Origin: Azolla caroliniana
Taxonomy: Eukaryota > Plantae > Polypodiophyta
Reading direction: 5' to 3'
Length of the DNA stretch: 64,000 nt
Assembly: GCA_043228905.1 (NCBI GenBank)
Contig: JBHGNT010000017.1
Span: 14,570,001 to 14,634,000 of the forward strand
Position 1 is the first letter of the stretch, and the number at the start of each line of letters is the position of its first letter. Positions 4,605-31,440 of the stretch are shown here, piece after piece. Both the position numbers and the translations under genes were made by a program. Under the pieces are notes generated by a model. It searched no databases and was not told the origin of the DNA. It saw nothing but the letters and a program-made list of their open reading frames with translations.

Positions 4605-4891
4605 ATGCCCTCAAAACATTTTGTATTAATGGATCTCATTTTCTTGCAAGATATTTTATATTAAATCAACTTTGAACATTCAAAGACGTGGGCAAGGGTT
4701 CAAAACTCTCACGATTCACTACACGTTTTTGCATTGCTTGACTTGCTACATACCAACTTTTCATTTTTCTCGTTTTTGAGTATATATATATATATACACA
4801 CACACACATCATATAGCCCATCCACACCCATTACACTACATTCACTACTACACTTTTTGGCACTATCTTAACTTGCTACATACATACATAC

Positions 4892-6601
4892 ATGGCTTCA
4901 AGCTCCACCAATTTTAGCTATGGTTTCCCTACACCCGGCCCCCAAAATCCTACCGGCACACATGTCATGGATCAGACCTTCTTCCTCTCCGAAGACCAGT
5001 GGAGAAAAGCTCGGGAGCAGGAGCAATTCGATTACATCGTAGTCGGCAGCGGCTTCTGTGCTCTCGCGTTCGCATCTCGGATCTTGGAGAAGGACCCGAG
5101 AGCTCGGCTACTACTGCTAGAGAGGGGCCCATTCTTCTTGCCAGAGCATTGTCAGGCTCTCCCGCTCCCATTCGAACACGCGATCGGTGGCTTCTCGGAG
5201 ACCTTCCCGTGGACGCTATCCGCCACAACTGCCGAGAGCAAGCCGCCTCACTATGTGACATGGCAGCACGGAATGGTCCCGTTCTTCGGTGGCCGATCCA
5301 CTACATGGAGCGGTTGGTGTCCGGAGCCGACCGATGAGGAGTTTGAGGATTGGCCACGAGAAGTCGTGGCCGCAGCTCGGGAATACATGCCCCTGGCAAG
5401 GGACCTCCTCAATGTGGTCTCATCCGACAAGATCGGGAACTGCCGGAACGATGCCGTGTTCGGGAACCTACAGCGCGAGCTCTTCGATTTCCTAGCTGGA
5501 CGCATCCCCGCGTTCAAGGCGGTCACGAGGGCGATCTATGCGCCCCTTGCTGTCCGGGACCCGCACGAGCAAGGCCTCGACTTCATCAAATTCTCCACTG
5601 TCGGCCCTCTGCTCACGCTGGTCGGGAAGTACCCAGGACAGCTCAAGATCGCCACTAACTGCACCGTGTACCGCATCCTCCACCAGAACTCCACGGCCAC
5701 CGCGCTCGAGACCAGCCGTGGCCATGTCCGCATCCACAGCTCCTCTAAGCTCATCCTCGCAATGGGCAGCATTCCGCCCGCGACCCTCGTCTTGAACTCA
5801 TTCCCGTCCCTACCCAATGTCGGCAATCGCTTCACCGCGCATTTCATCACTGCGATCGTGGCCAGGATCCCCCGCGCCTCTTGCACCTTCGCCGACTCCC
5901 TAGATAAGGAGAAGCTTGAATTAGGGGCGATCTACATTGCCGGGGTGGATCCTAAGAACAAATCCGCACAGTTCCATATCCAGCTAACCGCGATTCATGA
6001 CCCCGATCCCGACCGCAATGCTGAGGTGGCATTCCGCTATATGCCGGATGTGGTGGCTACGGCAAGTACCCAGCAACTAAATACGTCCCGGGAAAAGTAT
6101 GTGGTGCTTGTATGCGCCGTGTTGGGCGAGCTTGAGCATAAGAACGCTGATTCGTGGCTCAAACGGGGCGGCAATAATAACGGGGTGGTCGTAGAAGACC
6201 CGACGACAAACGTCGTCTTGCAAGTGAGAGAGACGGAGAATGATTTGCAACTCTGGGATGCTATGGATGAGACCACATTCCAAGTGTTGGAGCAGGGGCT
6301 AGCATCGGCTTTGAACGCAGAAGGCGGGTTGGAGTATTGGCACGGAGAGACGAACGACTGGAGAGCAACAAGACCAAGTAGAGATAGTATCCGCGTGCCG
6401 GGATTGGTGCACGAGGGGTCCACCATGCACATTGGAGGGGACATTGACCCAGAGGCTGTAGTTGACCTTGACTATCGCCTAAAAGGTGTCTCCAATGTGT
6501 GGGTGACAGGTGGTGCTTTGTGGCCGAAGAGTGGGTCATGGAACCCTACCCTAACGATGGTTGCCTTGACCCAACATCTAGCGGATAACTTCCTTGCTTG
6601 A
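4892..6601 (+). CDS. Intronless GMC-family FAD oxidoreductase (pyranose oxidase / C-glycoside oxidase / BetA-like), 569 aa
   Basis: Rossmann motif DYIVVGSGFCA..LLLERG, FFGGRSTTW flavin-loop, LILAMGSI, catalytic His (VHEGSTMHIG) and Asn (WNPTLTMVAL). Uninterrupted GC/CpG-rich ORF in AT-rich flanks, with a (TA)n TATA-like tract ~100 bp upstream. Confidence 0.92.
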   Translation: MASSSTNFSYGFPTPGPQNPTGTHVMDQTFFLSEDQWRKAREQEQFDYIVVGSGFCALAFASRILEKDPRARLLLLERGPFFLPEHCQALPLPFEHAIGGFSETFPWTLSATTAESKPPHYVTWQHGMVPFFGGRSTTWSGWCPEPTDEEFEDWPREVVAAAREYMPLARDLLNVVSSDKIGNCRNDAVFGNLQRELFDFLAGRIPAFKAVTRAIYAPLAVRDPHEQGLDFIKFSTVGPLLTLVGKYPGQLKIATNCTVYRILHQNSTATALETSRGHVRIHSSSKLILAMGSIPPATLVLNSFPSLPNVGNRFTAHFITAIVARIPRASCTFADSLDKEKLELGAIYIAGVDPKNKSAQFHIQLTAIHDPDPDRNAEVAFRYMPDVVATASTQQLNTSREKYVVLVCAVLGELEHKNADSWLKRGGNNNGVVVEDPTTNVVLQVRETENDLQLWDAMDETTFQVLEQGLASALNAEGGLEYWHGETNDWRATRPSRDSIRVPGLVHEGSTMHIGGDIDPEAVVDLDYRLKGVSNVWVTGGALWPKSGSWNPTLTMVALTQHLADNFLA

Positions 6602-6660
6602 CCATTTCCTCTAGCAACTCGTGGACATGGAACCCATTACCTTCTTGTCTCCATTGGACA

Positions 6661-6664
<4 letters not shown>

Positions 6665-6700
<36 letters not shown>
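6665..6700. repeat. (CT)n microsatellite in putative 3' UTR of the GMC gene
   Basis: Direct reading. Confidence 0.9.
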
Positions 6701-6703
<3 letters not shown>

Positions 6704-7609: not shown

Positions 7610-8039
7610 GTTGTAGTTGAATACTAGGTTGTTTGGTGGAGTCAATATGTGTTCCGACCCTACATTCCATAATGGCATCCAGTAAATTAAGAATTAAATA
7701 TGTATGTCATAATCGAGAGAGATTCAGCAAGTATAACTTGTTGTTGTTTGAGGCATACAGAAGGGGTCTTTACTCAAAATGTTTAAAATGGTACAAATGA
7801 TGGGATGGAGATCACCTTACAATTTTTAAGTTATTGGGTGTTACAACATTAGTTGAATATACATAATGTTTTCATGTTTGAGACATGGAGTTAAAACATA
7901 TATTAGGAAGTTGAAAGGTATTCTAATGCGGCGCGTTTGGGTATTTATATTTTTTGATGGTTTTAGAGAATGTCCCTCCTTAAGAGAGAGGTTTAAATCA
8001 TGTTTTTTACATGCAATTAATACAATTAATTGTATGCTT

Positions 8040-9447
8040 GGATTGGATAAGTTGAATGCAGAAGAGACAGTTTGTTCAGGTTGGTTTGTAGGTGAGGGTG
8101 ATGCACAACTTATCCGTGGTAGGTGCTCAACTAACGGGGATCATTTCTGGGGTAACCTAAGTTCTTTGACAAATGATGGTAGGTGGATGGTAGTGTTGAC
8201 GGGTAAGTGGTGGCAATTGAACCCATACCCTAAGACACTGGATCATGATTGTAAAATATGGCTTTATGATAACAAGCCCTTATATGATTTGGAGTGGGAT
8301 CCATTGGAGGTTTGGCGGCTGACTCCAAGAACAAAAATCTTGAAAAAGTTTTTTGAATACAATACCAAGCTAGGAAGACGAATCATTGGCTCCAAAACCG
8401 TGGGTGCTGGAATGATTCGCAACAGCTGGAAGGATAAAGGCATTTCAGACGACGATTTGAAGTCGTTTTGGAGGAGACTAAGGGCATTGGATATGCCAGA
8501 AAATTTTAAGGCTTGGTTGTGGCTTCTTAGCCATAAGGTAGTACCTGTAGGTGAGTGGTCGAGCTCTCGTGGTGGTGAGGCTAGCTGTAGGTTATGTGGA
8601 CAGGCTTTGGAATCAATCTCTCACTGTTTTTGGAATTGTACAGAGGCAATTAGCATTTGGAGTAGACGCCTTCGAATCATGGCAGCATGTGGTGTGAAAG
8701 GGAACGTTGTGTGGGGCTCAATACAAGAATTGTCCCTAAAAGGGGAAAGCTGGGGTGAACAGTTAAACCCTCGAGGACATGGATTTATAATGCAAGGTGG
8801 TAGAGTGTTCCAATGTAATGGGGTGAGACCAGGCACAAATTCTGAATTTTTTGAGGAGATTTGGCTTTATGGTGGCGTGTTTGACGGCCTAGCACATCTG
8901 GATCAGGCGTTGTAAGTTTGTTTTTCAGCAGCAAAAGCTCTCGTGCATGGAGATGATGTTAAATATATGGTTTGATCTTTGTGGCTTGGTTGCACGGTCG
9001 GTATGATTCAATTCAAGGGGATTCAGAAGAAGTAGAAAGGGCAAGGTCCAAGTTCTTGCTAAAATGGAGTAGCTCTCCCATGCTAGTTAAATCTTCATTG
9101 AGGCCTAAGTGGAATTACCAGGCACCTAGGTGGTTGTTTCCACCGATGGCTCCCAATATTGTACATGGGTTGTAATTATGTATGTATAACTAACACAAAC
9201 GTGCGTTAGTATAGTCATGTTACCCGGATAATGTTGTTAGAAAAGAGTTAGTTGGGTAGAGTCGGGGTAAATTAGGGTTTATTTCAATTTTGCTTAAGGA
9301 TCGGTTGAGTTTTTTTGTTGTTTTTGTTTGATTTTGGAGTTGTTTCTCCAAGTTGTATATGTTGATCCCATTGTGGATTTGGACAAACTTTGTTGTATTC
9401 TATTTGCTAACTAATGCGAAGCAATGGTTTTTGGAAAAAAGAAGAAG
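8040..9447 (+). mobile_element. 5'-truncated LINE (L1-like) with zf-RVT CCHC domain
   Basis: FWRRLRAL..KAWLWLL..CRLCGQALESISHCFWNC is the zf-RVT motif of L1 ORF2. A-rich 3' end. 13-bp TSD TAATTGTATGCTT at 8027-8039 and 9448-9460. Confidence 0.88.
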
Positions 9448-10289: not shown

Positions 10290-10690
10290 CTCTCTCTCTC
10301 TCTCTTTAAACTGGTCATATATGACCTCCGAAGACGATAATATAATCTATCTATCTCTTTAAATTGGCCTCATCATGGACAATAAAATATCGATTATATT
10401 GTCTCTCTCTCTCTCTCTTTAAATTGGCCTCATCATGGACAATAAAATATCGATTATATTCTCTCTCTCTCTCTCTCTTTAAATTGGCCATATTTGACAT
10501 TTGAAGACCCTAATAATCTATCTAATCTATCTATCTCTTTTTAAATTGGCCTCATCATGGACAATAAAATATCGATTATATTGTTTCTCTCTCTTTCTCA
10601 ATGTTGGCCTCGTCATGGAAGATAAAATATCTATTATATTGACTCTCTCTCTCACACACAAAAGTGGCCTCATCATTGTCGATAAAATAT
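10290..10690. repeat. ~60-bp tandem repeat with (CT)n spacers
   Basis: About seven units of TTTAAATTGGCCTCATCATGGACAATAAAATATCGATTATATT(CT)n. Confidence 0.8.
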
Positions 10691-12094: not shown

Positions 12095-12791
12095 TGTCAG
12101 ACACCTTCGAGCCTCACACTCACTTAACGATTAATAGATGATTAAGCATGATATCTCTCTCACTCTCTCAAGCTCGCTCTCATAGACAATAGGGTAATAA
12201 ATATAGACAATAAGAGTAATGAATATGTTTATTAACCCTCTTTGCTAAGAGGTCTAGCACCAACAAGGAAGAGAGATTAGTGTTCTCTAACTAAACACTT
12301 CACTAATCTCTCTTAAGCTTAAAGTTTACAGGGAGGAGAGGAAGCTCTACCTCTTAATCAATAGGGAGATCTTTACAAATGAAAGAACCATTACAAAGCC
12401 AACACCATGTGGTTTATATAGCATTTACATTTAGGGTATGGACCTTGCACACTTGGATGTCCTTTAACCCTCTTTCTTCTTGTCATTCTCTCTTCGTAGG
12501 TCCTTTAGCCATACTATGTCCTTGTTGATGCGCTCTTCTTCACGACTGGTCGTGGTGCTATCCAAGGGCTTAATCAATAGGGAGATCTTTACAAATGAAA
12601 GAACCATTACAAAGCCAACACCATGTGGTTTATATAGCATTTACATTTAGGGTATGGACCTTGCACACTTGGATGTCCTTTAACCCTCTTTCTTCTTGTC
12701 ATTCTCTCTTCGTAGGTCCTTTAGCCATACTATGTCCTTGTTGATGCGCTCTTCTTCACGACTGGTCGTGGTGCTATCCAAGGGCTTAACA
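12095..12791 (-). mobile_element. Probable solo LTR with an internal 216-bp tandem duplication
   Basis: TGTCA...TAACA termini with flanks ATGGT/ATTGT (4/5). 12353-12568 is repeated at 12569-12784. Confidence 0.55.
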
Positions 12792-27077: not shown

Positions 27078-30000
27078 CATTGCGGTATTCCGCGGGTATG
27101 TGTAAAAGAGGGGCGGGACCACAGGGATCTCGGACGAGGAAGTGATGGGGTGTCGGAAGCCGACTTCTCTCCGGTCTTGGCTGCACTGGTTGTGGCACGA
27201 ACTGGAGAGATTCCGGACGCGTACTATGGCTACCAAACGCGAGAGAGGAAGAGAGGGAGAGCATGTGCGCGACACCGACTTTTATGTACAGTCAAAACAA
27301 AGGAGGGGCCTATCCACCCGACACCAACAGAGACACCATTATGCACACACAGATATGATCATGTATATTACAAGGGAAAGAATACAACCCCAACTTCGAG
27401 CCGGACCAATGTAGGTTACAGCCGCAGTCGGTTGCCAAGCCGTCGGTCGGGGAGCTCATGGGTTGTTGCGCGGAGCGGGGTCTTGCATAGGACCGAGCAG
27501 AAGCAAACCTCAAAAAGGGGGGGAGATACAACCACGGCCCCGAGTCGGCTACGCACAGAAGAAGAGAAACTAACCTAACAGCTTGTCGTCATAGCTACTG
27601 CTCGACTCCTCGAGAAGAAGCAGGAAAGAAACGAAGAAGAAAGGAAAGAATGTAGCTAACCCTAGAAAGAAACATAAAACGGTATACCCTTATGACTCAA
27701 AATTGGGCAACCCCTTCACAAGGGGCTCTCCCTTCCTTTTATAGAACAAGGAGAGAGATGCGTTACAATGTGGGATAAATCCCGATTTACATGAGATCCT
27801 CTGTCCCTACTTAACTCCTATTATTCACACATTTTTACAAGGGTAAGTGCACATGGTGCACACCACCAATTCTCCCGATATTCTTCGATTCTGCCTAGGG
27901 AAGGTTTTCTCCACGACATCCGCCCCCACCTAACCGCGCATCCACCGGTATGCGCCAAAATAGACTCTTGCCGGAGAAGACCGACCCGCACTTACCCTTC
28001 GTTCTCCGGGTCACCAATCGCTTCGAATCGGTCGTCCTCGCTATCCATGTTGCCCAGATCCGGTTCATCCTCATGCCGCTTGCCTCTCCGTAGGCTCATT
28101 CGTCCCGCCAATAGGTCGTTCGCTGCAACCCCGTAGTACATGTGCCTCATCGTTGGCCCTTCCCTCGGCCGTATGCACGCTCCGCTCTTCGTGTACTGGT
28201 GTCCTCCACGTCCGAGGAACACCCCGTGGTAGCCCGCTTGACCACTTTCGTCCCACGCTGCTGCTACCGGTTTGGAGCCTTCCGCTCGCCGTCGTCCCCT
28301 CGCCCCCACCAGCTTGTTGTCTCGGGTCTGGTACGCTACGCCAGTCGTTGCCACTCCCATCCGTAGTTCTTTGCCTTCGTCCCCTTGCCACCACCGATCG
28401 TCACTCTAGGTCTCACGCCGGCCCTTCGGCCGACCGCCAGAGTCTCTGGAACCGGTGTGAAGGATCCTCCTCGGCTCGTTGTATCTCAGACCCTTATCCC
28501 GGGTCGTCTTCGTCCGCAAGTCGAGAGGGTGGCTTGCTCCACACCCTCTCCCGTGGTACCGCCATACCGTGTTCCCGGCCTCTCTCTCTTCTTCTGGATC
28601 GGTTATCCGAAAGTCCGTTCCGCCCCGTTCTCATCCGGGTCTGCCTGTCATTCTCTGGATTGCCGGGTCCCCTTCTCCCATCGCCACTGATCTCTCCTAT
28701 AGGACTCACGCCGGCACTCGCGCCTACAGCCGGATCGGTGTGAGGATCTCCGTAGGACCGGTCTTCATTCTCCTCTTCATCCTCTGTACTTCTCCTGAAC
28801 TCGTCGTCGCTCTCCTCGCTGTGCTCCCGCCACCATCTTCCATCTCTTTCGGTCTCACGTTGCCACGCCGACCGAATTGCCGAAGTCTCCGGACAAGATG
28901 TGGGGTAAATGATTTCGCAACATCTTTTGGTGACTCGTCCAGGGCCATTGACCCTTTTAGTGGTGTCGGTGGAAAGCATCCGCTCTGTGATTAACCAAGC
29001 CCCGCCTGGGCTTGATTCTCCAATGTCCGAGGTTTCGGCTGTGATGCTGACCTCGCCGGACTCATTCTGAACCCTTGATCACCTTCTTCCTGATGTCCCG
29101 ACCTTCGCCCGACCGGTCTTTCTCCCCATGTAAAAGAGGGCGGCTCGTTCCACACCCTCTCCCATATCGGCACCTTCATGCCAATTCCGGCCCCCGTCGA
29201 ATAATTCACGAGTGGATCGCACCCCACCTGAATCGGAGCGCCGCGGGGTCGGTCCCCGGTCGGATCGTTTCATGGTCCCCTCGTCGACCTTCTCGCGGGC
29301 TGTCTCCCATCCATTTTCGCTGGCATCGTGCTAGGACTCCTCGATACCGTCATCCATCTCCTCGGTCTCACATGGGCGTAAGGGCCCGAATGCCGAGTTC
29401 TCCGGAATCGGTTTCGAGGGCTCTTGTCTGCTCCTTCCTTGAATCATCTCGCCGGCGATTCTCGGTCTTACGCCGCTGTCTTCCTCCTCCAGGGACTCAC
29501 GTGGGCACTCAGGCCTGATTGCCATCGTCTCGGGAGCAAGTGTGGGAAGATGCGAAGAGCCGCCCGTCCGTTTTACGCCCTCGTTCGTAGCCACCGGCTC
29601 CTCGTGGTCGGTGGTCGACTCCTTACTGATCGCGCAAGCCCCGCTTGGGCTTGCTTTTCCCATGTCAGGGGTTTTGGGCTGACATGCCCGAAACCGCCGG
29701 TCCCAATGTTCCGATTCTGGGATCGGTATCTCGGCCTCGTCCTCGGCCGTTCTAGCTCCGCAAGTCGAGATGGCGTTTTGTTCCGCGCCCTCTCCCGTGG
29801 TACCGTTGTATCGATCTCCTGCCATCTCGTGGGGCAAGTCCGCCTCCCCGGCGTCGGCTCGCGGTTTCAATCTTTCCTCTTCCTCGAGCATTCCCTCGAG
29901 AGCCGCGTACGCCTCCGCAATCCTGGCCCCGACGCCGACCCTTGCTGACTCTCTTTGCCGTTCGGCCTCTTCCCGTTGTGATGGCACGCCGTCACGCGCC

Positions 30001-31440
30001 TTCCTCTTAGCCTTCTTGGCTCGCTCGTCGTCTAGCTGTTGGCATACCCTTCCGACCTTCGACCAGTCCTCCGTAAGGCCATTCGTTCCGTCCTCGTCTT
30101 CGAGGTCAAGCCCGATGGCCTCCTGTTCCGCTCGGTCAATCGACCTGACGAACAACAGGACTTTGTCCGCCCCCACCAAACCTTGTTCCTGCTTCGGGAG
30201 CCGAGCAAGTCGCCGCTCGAACTCTCGGAACGCCTTCATTGCGCCTCGGTGGGTCTTCGCCGATGCTATCCACTGGTTGAAGTTGCGTCATCCCCGGCTC
30301 TTCCGACGTCCTCCATATGCCTGCAGGAGCGCCTCTTCGAAGGCCTCCCACGAACTATGAGCTTCTCGGAGCTCCTTCACCTCCGTCTCACTCCTCCATT
30401 TCTGCGTTGTAGGCTTCCAAGTAGAATGGGACCTTGTCCCCGTTGAAATGACTGACTCTTTCGACCACTAGCTCCACCGCTTGCTGCGCCGACTCTCGTC
30501 TTGCTGTTGCTCGTCCAAACTCCCTCACCACTTCGACAAAAAGTTGCACGAAGTCGTCTTCTTCCAACTCCATCCTCCCTTGCCGCCCTTCACGTCGGGT
30601 TCACCAAATATATCGCGGTATTCTGCGGGTACGTGTAAAAGAGGGGCGGGACCATGGGGATCTCGGACGAGGAAGTGATGGGGTGTCGGAAGCCGACTTC
30701 TCTCTGGTCCCGACTGCACTAGTTGTGGTGCGAACTGGAGCGATTCTGGACGCGTAACGGTGGCTACCAAACGCGAGAGAGAGCATGCGCACGACACCGA
30801 CTTTTATGTACAGTCAAAACAAAGGAGGGGCCTATCCACCCGACACCAACAGAGACACTATTATGCACAAACAGATATGATCATGTATATTACAAGGGAA
30901 AGAATACAACCCCGACTTCGAGCCAGACCAAGGTAGGTTACAACCGCAGTTGGTTGCCAAGCCGTCGGTCGGGGAGCTCACAGGCTGTCGCGCGGAGCGG
31001 GGTCTTGCACAGGACCGAGCAGAAACAAACCTCAAAAAGGGGGGGAGATACAACCACGACCCCGATCCGGCTACGCACAGAAGAAGAGAAACTAACCTAA
31101 CAGCTTGTCGTCATAGCTACTGCTCGACTCCTCGAGAAGAAGCAGGAAAGAAATGAAGAAGAAAGGAAAGAATGTAGCTAACCCTAGAAAGAAACATAAA
31201 ACGGTATACCCTTACGACTCAAAATTGGGCAACCCCTTCACAAGGGGCTCTCCCGTCCTTTTATAGAACAAGGAGAGAGATGCGTTAAAATGTAGGATAA
31301 ATCTCGATTTACATGGGATCCTCTGTCCCTACTTAACTCCTATTATTCACACATTTTTACAAGGGTAAGTGCACATGGTGCACACCACCTATTCTCCCGA
31401 TATTCTTCGATTCTGCCTAGGGACAGTTTTCTCCACGACA
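27078..31440 (-). mobile_element. Non-autonomous gag-only LTR retrotransposon with tRNA-Trp PBS (Phygy-like)
   Basis: Highly similar ~830-bp LTRs at 27078-27918 and 30611-31440. PBS complement TTCACGTCGGGTTCACCA at 30589-30606. PPT near 27920. Gag-like ORFs at 29331-30573. No RT/IN motifs. Confidence 0.85.

Follow-up and report, generated by a model that had tools for sequence, protein, structure and literature searches.

A bacterial-type GMC oxidoreductase gene in the fern Azolla caroliniana and its probable origin by horizontal transfer

How did an intact gene of bacterial appearance come to lie among dead retroelements in a fern genome, and is it still at work there? The question is raised by a stretch of 64,000 nucleotides from Azolla caroliniana (assembly GCA_043228905.1, contig JBHGNT010000017.1, positions 14,570,001 to 14,634,000; this whole stretch is called the window below), which carries an open reading frame (ORF) for an oxidoreductase from the superfamily of glucose-methanol-choline (GMC) enzymes, which use flavin adenine dinucleotide (FAD). 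With a probability of roughly 0.7, we read it as a working GMC oxidoreductase gene that resides in the plant and is descended from bacteria. The ORF runs from an ATG start through 569 codons to a stop with no internal stop codon, a stop-free length expected by chance at its own base composition with P of about 9e-10, which bears out the intact single exon described in an earlier note on this DNA. The coding sequence (CDS) and its diagnostic motifs are as follows, in window coordinates.

4892..6601, plus strand: single-exon CDS of a GMC-superfamily FAD oxidoreductase of an uncharacterized, mostly bacterial subfamily (from the ORF, Pfam and the relatives).
5027..5125, plus strand: N-terminal FAD-binding beta-alpha-beta unit, residues 46 to 78, FDYIVVGSGFCALAF...LLLLERG, with GxGxxA and the conserved Glu77 (aligned to 8qve, 8rpg, choline oxidase and others).
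5288..5308, plus strand: GGRSTTW, residues 133 to 139, flavin-proximal loop (profile-to-PDB alignment; family consensus GGRSTLW).
6407..6424, plus strand: VHEGST with the catalytic His507 (invariant in 34/34 aligned members; aligned to the catalytic-His segment of 8qve).
6536..6556, plus strand: SWNPTLT with Asn551, second residue of the His/Asn pair (S-W-N-P-T invariant; aligned to ACNPTIT of 8qve and 7qf8).

Judged by sequence, the relatives of the encoded protein are a compact, distinct and uncharacterized GMC subfamily. The window protein aligns over its full length, at 52 to 58% identity, with about 460 relatives of 560 to 620 amino acids (aa). Bacterial members, such as those of Priestia megaterium, Paenibacillus polymyxa, Longimicrobium, Sorangium, Flavobacterium and Scytonema (about 565 to 620 aa), and the subfamily's plant offshoot share with it an N-terminal segment of about 40 residues (NF.YG.PTPGPQ.P), the FAD motif GxGxxA...E, the loop GGRST(L/T)W, VHEGST and SWNPT, and the family does not vary at Gly52, Glu77 or Arg78. 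The Pfam profile GMC_oxred_C (PF05199) matches residues 441 to 559 (E 8.5e-13; 49.5 bits against a cutoff of 24.6). No match to GMC_oxred_N (PF00732), a profile matched by only a minority of family members, was found in the window protein; despite this, the GxGxxA...E motif is present and structural alignments cover residues 37 to 569 at a Z score of 27. The NCBIfam models for MftG, choline dehydrogenase and pyranose oxidase were matched far below threshold, the pyranose_ox equivalog TIGR02462 at 19.1 bits against a cutoff of 544.9, and sequence matches to solved structures were limited to the FAD motif and the catalytic C terminus. The ordinary plant GMC proteins HOTHEAD, mandelonitrile lyase and long-chain alcohol oxidase have the same superfamily fold and match GMC_oxred_N. 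None of them appeared among the relatives found, and together with the missing GMC_oxred_N match this sustains the earlier note's description of the gene as a bacterial-type GMC that stands apart from them.

The catalytic residues that the earlier note had pointed out, His507 and Asn551, are both present and invariant in the family. In an alignment with the family profile, GGRSTLW..CP.P falls on GGM..HW..CP.P of 8qve and 7qf8, which makes Thr138 (Leu in the family consensus) the counterpart of the His in the GG(M)xxHW motif that bacterial pyranose and C-glycoside oxidases carry. This His is the flavinylated residue, bearing covalent 8-alpha-histidyl FAD, in the fungal pyranose oxidase P2O. Because Thr138 replaces it, the alignment supports the absence of a covalent histidyl-FAD from the window protein, and the non-covalent cofactor that had been proposed from GGRSTTW appears reasonable. 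Relative to the bacterial proteins there is neither an N-terminal extension nor a hydrophobic leader, in agreement with the earlier report of no obvious signal peptide, and since such a leader is missing the protein is presumably cytosolic. Three relatives of the Chlamydiales group (P0070, P0088 and P0090) have presequence-like N-terminal extensions of 40 to 70 residues; two of these come from contigs that could be eukaryotic.

The subfamily is widespread in bacteria. In a scan of GTDB species representatives, one genome per bacterial species, 108 genome stretches encoded relatives, of which at least 80 distinct loci were kept, from at least nine phyla: Gemmatimonadota, Bacteroidota, Pseudomonadota, Myxococcota, Actinomycetota, Cyanobacteriota, Acidobacteriota, Chlamydiota and Verrucomicrobiota. 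In plants it is patchy. When the proteins of the window, Diphasiastrum and Ceratopteris each served as query in protein searches and the best 120 matches of each were considered, the only named eukaryotes were the lycophyte Diphasiastrum complanatum (O6H91_07G015200) and the ferns Ceratopteris richardii (KP509_35G051300) and Adiantum nelumboides (L7F22_003942); no seed plant, bryophyte or alga was among the named matches, which were a minority of the list. These three proteins and three more from short contigs form a plant clade of six (support 97 to 98) that lies inside bacterial diversity as sister to Priestia and Paenibacillus of the Bacillota (support 99), to whose proteins it is 65 to 70% identical.

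The copies in plants are truly part of the genomes. In Diphasiastrum, a 75-Mb chromosome carries the gene as one exon between AT-rich, CpG-poor flanks. The Ceratopteris gene spans 2323 nucleotides (nt) for 592 aa and the Adiantum gene 2573 nt for 604 aa, and because these spans exceed the CDS by 544 and 758 nt, respectively, both genes have introns. The Diphasiastrum annotation holds two locus tags, 07G015100 and 07G015200, and a copy on an unplaced scaffold, with several annotated isoforms that fall into one 90% cluster; the ±10 kb examined holds a single copy, and the extra copies may represent a tandem duplicate or a haplotig.

Because the family is bacterial, patchy in plants and represented there by a clade nested beside the Bacillota, the data point to an old transfer from bacteria to plants, and we consider it very probable from these trees that the plant members derive from a bacterial gene acquired horizontally. 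The earlier note had suggested horizontal acquisition, and that part stands. The acquisition is not, however, private to this genome: the lycophyte and the other fern homologs form one plant clade, so the transfer to the family's plant members appears old and shared.

The window copy itself forms the longest branch in the family, with a length of 0.96 under LG and of 1.35 under LG+C20, where the medians are 0.17 to 0.25, and about 1.7 times the path to the Pteridaceae under the C20 model. It is also the most divergent of 159 members when set against the bacterial subfamily and its plant offshoot, with private deletions at about residues 184 to 187 and 248 and private insertions at about 338 and 426 to 432. 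Insertions and deletions mildly favor the window copy as a fast-evolving fern descendant of the same transfer. A 4-residue deletion is common to the window protein and all six plant proteins and occurs in 16/152 bacterial rows of the alignment, but neither in the Bacillota sisters nor in P0009 and P0035, two proteins that sit in bacterial gene neighborhoods. A further deletion at residues 243 to 256 and an insertion at 424 to 440 coincide with the sites of smaller fern indels, and the combination of all three is found only in the window protein and three ferns (0/152 bacterial and 0/3 lycophyte-like rows). We regard this alignment-based evidence for a fern link as moderate, since the loops concerned also vary in bacteria and the window indels are larger than those of the ferns. 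Fast evolution is general to the fern copies, as the Ceratopteris protein is only 56 to 63% identical to bacterial proteins. Constrained IQ-TREE searches, compared with the approximately unbiased (AU) test under LG+F+G4 only, gave the following differences in log likelihood (delta lnL).

Window copy with the plant clade: delta lnL 9.0, p-AU 0.42.
Window copy with the ferns: delta lnL 26.8, p-AU 0.24.
Window copy with P0009 and P0035: delta lnL 12.2, p-AU 0.40.

None of the three constraints was rejected. When attachment points were scored on a fixed backbone, 28 of 62 were likewise retained, the best of them deep in the tree beside other long branches.

Several results weigh against descent of the window copy from the fern clade's acquisition. 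The substitution trees never placed it inside the plant clade; its neighbors shifted with model and sampling among P0009 and P0035, Flavobacterium (Flavobacteriia) and the Burkholderiales; and on the fixed backbone the plant clade drew 0.14 of the expected likelihood weight. It carries 4 of 37 fern-diagnostic and 1 of 4 plant-diagnostic residues. The window indels are longer than their fern counterparts and fall in loops variable in bacteria too, which leaves their homology uncertain. Furthermore, the protein lacks the lysine-rich C-terminal tail found in all six plant-clade proteins, and the observed/expected CpG ratio (CpG o/e) of its CDS, 0.91, is nearer to that of bacterial genes (about 1.1) than to that of most plant copies (0.64 to 0.82, with one at 1.04). 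With respect to C termini in general, bacterial members of several phyla end in a conserved tail (approximately LE.T..S.[ML][ST]) and the plant clade in lysine-rich tails resembling nuclear localization signals; the window protein has neither.

The best-surviving alternative is an independent second transfer, in which the gene came directly from an unsampled or divergent bacterium, apart from the event shared by Diphasiastrum and the Pteridaceae. In its favor, the best likelihood placements fall outside the plant clade beside bacterial long branches, residues 141 to 159 locally resemble P0009 and P0035, and the gene combines freedom from introns with its bacterial-like CpG o/e and the missing plant-type tail. 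However, no bacterial protein above 58% identity was found among 5.8 billion clusters, and the diagnostic residues of the sampled clades occur in the window protein only at chance-like levels (6 of 60 for P0009/P0035, 8 of 113 for P0032/P0034 and 0 for the Bacillota), the residue signatures of every candidate clade being only mildly above background. Kinship with P0032 was rejected because the window protein has just 1 of the 40 states of the next node up, so the similarities to P0032 are best read as convergent. The three indel states common only to the window copy and the ferns, the absence of any remaining bacterial flank or partner gene, and the AU test, which keeps both the plant and the fern placement, also speak against it. 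On balance, we put descent of the window copy from the same transfer event as the fern clade at about even odds and regard a separate transfer as a possibility of lesser but substantial weight. Rather unlikely, in our judgment, is a wider version of the latter, with more than one entry of the subfamily into seed-free vascular plants, the window gene being either an independent acquisition or an ancient fern paralog of changed function that now serves a fern-specific cytosolic oxidation, e.g., glycoside 3-oxidation in specialized metabolism.

Closer relatives that might shorten the long branch did not turn up. None above 58% identity was found in the protein searches, among the 5.8 billion clusters or in a scan of metagenomes with six window-specific peptides; the window's own protein is absent from a collection of 15 billion proteins, and metagenome contigs held no sequence near-identical to the gene.

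The gene's long branch could also mark a relic without function, either a retrocopy or a duplicate stranded in a desert of transposable elements (TEs), that is still open by chance and has evolved under relaxed constraint. The gene does stand alone among dead retroelements with no neighboring genes, it is intron-free while two fern orthologs carry introns, and among 159 members it is the most deviant at columns conserved in at least 90% (25 of 218 columns, where the other sequences have a median of 3 and reach 16 at most); many of its changes there are conservative. At about 43% overall divergence, however, the window protein keeps 121 of the 124 columns that show no variation among 33 relatives (an alignment artifact at the start Met accounts for one of its three losses, and other members lose 0 to 7) and departs from only 3 of the 137 columns conserved in at least 98%. 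Residues 145 and 170 (window positions 5324-5326 and 5399-5401) are Arg and Glu in 154 of 159 members and Glu and Arg only in the window protein, P0032 and P0034, with Glu and Lys in P0033; this R145E/E170R charge swap suggests that a salt bridge has been kept. The 569 stop-free codons, the intact catalytic pair and FAD motif, and a CpG-rich, apparently unmethylated gene body unlike the surrounding TEs also argue against decay. An origin as a retrocopy or as TE cargo was rejected, as no poly(A) tract, target-site duplication, pair of long terminal repeats (LTRs) or pair of terminal inverted repeats (TIRs) was found around the gene. The pattern fits a protein whose fold and catalysis are under purifying selection and whose other parts have seen constraint shift or relax, and because the invariant columns and the His/Asn pair are kept we consider the window gene very likely to be functional, a relic being improbable.

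Vertical inheritance of a family ancestral to plants or eukaryotes and lost nearly everywhere is very improbable. The top ESM Atlas cluster, in which bacteria make up only about 66% of the members whose taxa are known and which bears a eukaryote-style automatic name, hints at other eukaryotic holders of the family and so lends this explanation some support, but the plant clade is nested in bacteria beside Bacillota proteins to which it is 65 to 70% identical. Orthologs across algae and land plants, which the earlier note had named as the contrary outcome, were not what we recovered, as no seed plant, bryophyte or alga stood among the named best 120 matches per query.

For the local DNA, the following features apply.

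4784..4891, plus strand: AT-rich 5' flank with a (TA)n(CA)n microsatellite about 85 to 105 nt upstream of the ATG (direct reading).
6602..6702, plus strand: 3' flank in which GC content falls directly after the stop, with a (CT)n microsatellite at 6665-6702, about 60 nt downstream (direct reading, composition).
7866..8915, plus strand: nearest other ORF, a fragment of the long interspersed nuclear element (LINE) type with zf-RVT, 1.26 kb downstream (Pfam zf-RVT, E 2.9e-8).

By position, GC content is 0.54 to 0.60 within the ORF and 0.35 to 0.38 on either side. The CDS as a whole has a GC content of 0.57, a third-position GC content (GC3) of 0.67 and a CpG o/e of 0.91, against 0.35 to 0.39 GC and a CpG o/e of 0.5 to 0.6 in the flanks, which are CpG depleted with TpG/CpA in excess, so that the compositional contrast described earlier holds. 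The start codon has A at -3 and G at +4, with no Shine-Dalgarno motif visible in the 40 nt upstream. The 3' flank shows no poly(A) tract, and no LTR pair, TIR pair or target-site duplication was found bracketing the gene. The LINE-type neighbor shows that the gene sits in eukaryotic retroelement DNA. Of the other ORFs of at least 140 aa in the window, those with a Pfam match all come from copia, Ty3 or LINE elements, as fragments of gag, reverse transcriptase, RNase H, integrase or zf-RVT, and the remainder have no Pfam match. That this is the only intact gene in 64 kb holds as a statement at the level of ORFs, a survey that multi-exon genes made of short exons would escape.

Bacterial contamination or a chimeric assembly, to which only the bacterial-like composition of the ORF would point, is the least probable explanation of all, because AT-rich microsatellite DNA adjoins the ORF within about 100 nt of both ends, so that a chimera would require junctions at both, and the start context is eukaryotic, the LINE fragment lies 1.26 kb away, retrotransposons fill the surrounding 64 kb and no near-identical bacterial or metagenomic sequence was found; here we agree with the earlier note.

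Other parts of the window have features of their own. The stretch at 28000-30500 is about 60% GC with strong strand asymmetry (the plus strand is pyrimidine-rich) and long overlapping ORFs on both strands, among them a Glu/Arg-rich ORF of 302 aa at 29331-30239 on the minus strand without a Pfam match; it is probably TE derived. A perfect tandem duplication of 2 x 216 nt lies at 12353-12784, and a degenerate tandem array with a period of about 60 nt lies at 10290-10690.

What the enzyme acts on can be approached through its fold and through the bacterial gene neighborhoods. An AlphaFold2 model built from 34 sequences (predicted template modeling score, pTM, 0.85) has as its nearest solved folds the glycoside 3-oxidases and C-glycoside oxidases (PsG3Ox 7qf8, 7qfd and 7qva; CarA 7dve; DaCGO1 8qve) together with pyranose oxidases (9fl2 and fungal P2O 1tt0). 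The VIA-align Z scores for 7qfd, 7qva, 7dve, 8qve and the pyranose oxidases are 25 to 27 over 404 to 436 residues at 12 to 21% identity, and Foldseek puts the same group on top at E values of 1e-19 to 1e-22. These enzymes also have the His/Asn pair and a loop of the form GG..(H/T/L)W..CP.P. In contrast to them, the window protein replaces the His of the flavinylation site and has the extra conserved N-terminal segment of about 40 residues, and choline oxidase scores nearly as well, at Z 24 against up to 27. The second-nearest shape cluster in the ESM Atlas (template modeling score 0.81; 53 members, most commonly Acidobacteriota) consists of bacterial GMC proteins that carry a fused 3-keto-disaccharide hydrolase domain (PF06439), a lead that would be in line with glycoside 3-oxidation in near relatives. 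The sugar or glycoside oxidase suggested in the earlier note is left unsupported, its basis being structural neighbors of 12 to 21% identity and the domain fusion of a related cluster; by this analogy a sugar or glycoside hydroxyl is our best guess for the substrate, if a doubtful one. A role in H2O2-based defense is speculation; the protein is without a signal peptide and its bacterial relatives are leaderless.

The bacterial neighborhoods contain no recurrent sugar utilization genes beside the subfamily's members. What recurs is a gene with PAS-like and Cupin_5 (DUF985) domains, either fused (about 306 aa) or split (136 + 180 aa); at 18 of the 75 bacterial loci, in phyla far apart, it lies directly beside the GMC gene on the same strand.

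Loci with the PAS-Cupin_5 gene directly up- or downstream of the GMC gene: L009, L012, L014, L017, L021, L032, L040, L049, L051, L058, L059, L063, L065, L067, L071, L073, L081, L082.

Four cyanobacterial loci (L071, L073, L082 and L087) add a Polyketide_cyc2 gene. The GMC and PAS-Cupin_5 genes are a conserved, unstudied operon. Unlike these bacterial relatives, the window copy has neither the C-terminal tail nor a PAS-Cupin_5 partner gene, and neither the window nor the surroundings of the other plant copies showed a trace of PAS or Cupin_5, for which reason cotransfer of the partner gene was rejected. In a literature search, we found no studied member or substrate of this GMC subfamily and no described transfer of a GMC gene to plants.

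Taken together, we propose the following history and mechanism. The subfamily would be bacterial in origin and would have been brought into plants by horizontal transfer. The window copy may descend from the fern clade's old acquisition, after which it would have evolved rapidly, dropped the lysine-rich C-terminal tail and stayed or become intron-free. Its product is predicted to be a leaderless, presumably cytosolic, FAD-dependent GMC oxidoreductase, encoded in the nucleus of a seed-free vascular plant by a gene that selection maintains. From family chemistry, His507, helped by Asn551, would take the hydroxyl proton of a CH-OH substrate while the hydride passes to N5 of the non-covalently bound FAD, and the reduced flavin would be reoxidized by O2 with formation of H2O2 or by some other acceptor.

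The closest parallels to this history come from other genes of seed-free plants. The Azolla/Salvinia genome paper describes Tma12, an insecticidal protein resembling lytic polysaccharide monooxygenases, and a squalene-hopene cyclase as bacterial transfers and mentions no GMC gene (PMC6786969), nor is one mentioned in a 2025 review of horizontal transfer in plants (PMC12448838). Tma12 and the squalene-hopene cyclase are likewise bacterial in type, patchy in seed-free plants and set amid plant sequence, and they belong to different protein families.

Transfers of working enzymes from bacteria to plants are few, and several are known from ferns and lycophytes. The GMC subfamily would add a documented case, one mentioned neither in those two papers nor in the other literature that we found. 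A lycophyte and at least two fern lineages hold copies that would represent different stages of domestication, intron-free or intron-bearing and with or without a lysine-rich tail. The activity of any subfamily member, taken together with its conserved PAS-Cupin_5 neighbor, would define a new branch of GMC chemistry and would also show what seed-free plants gained.

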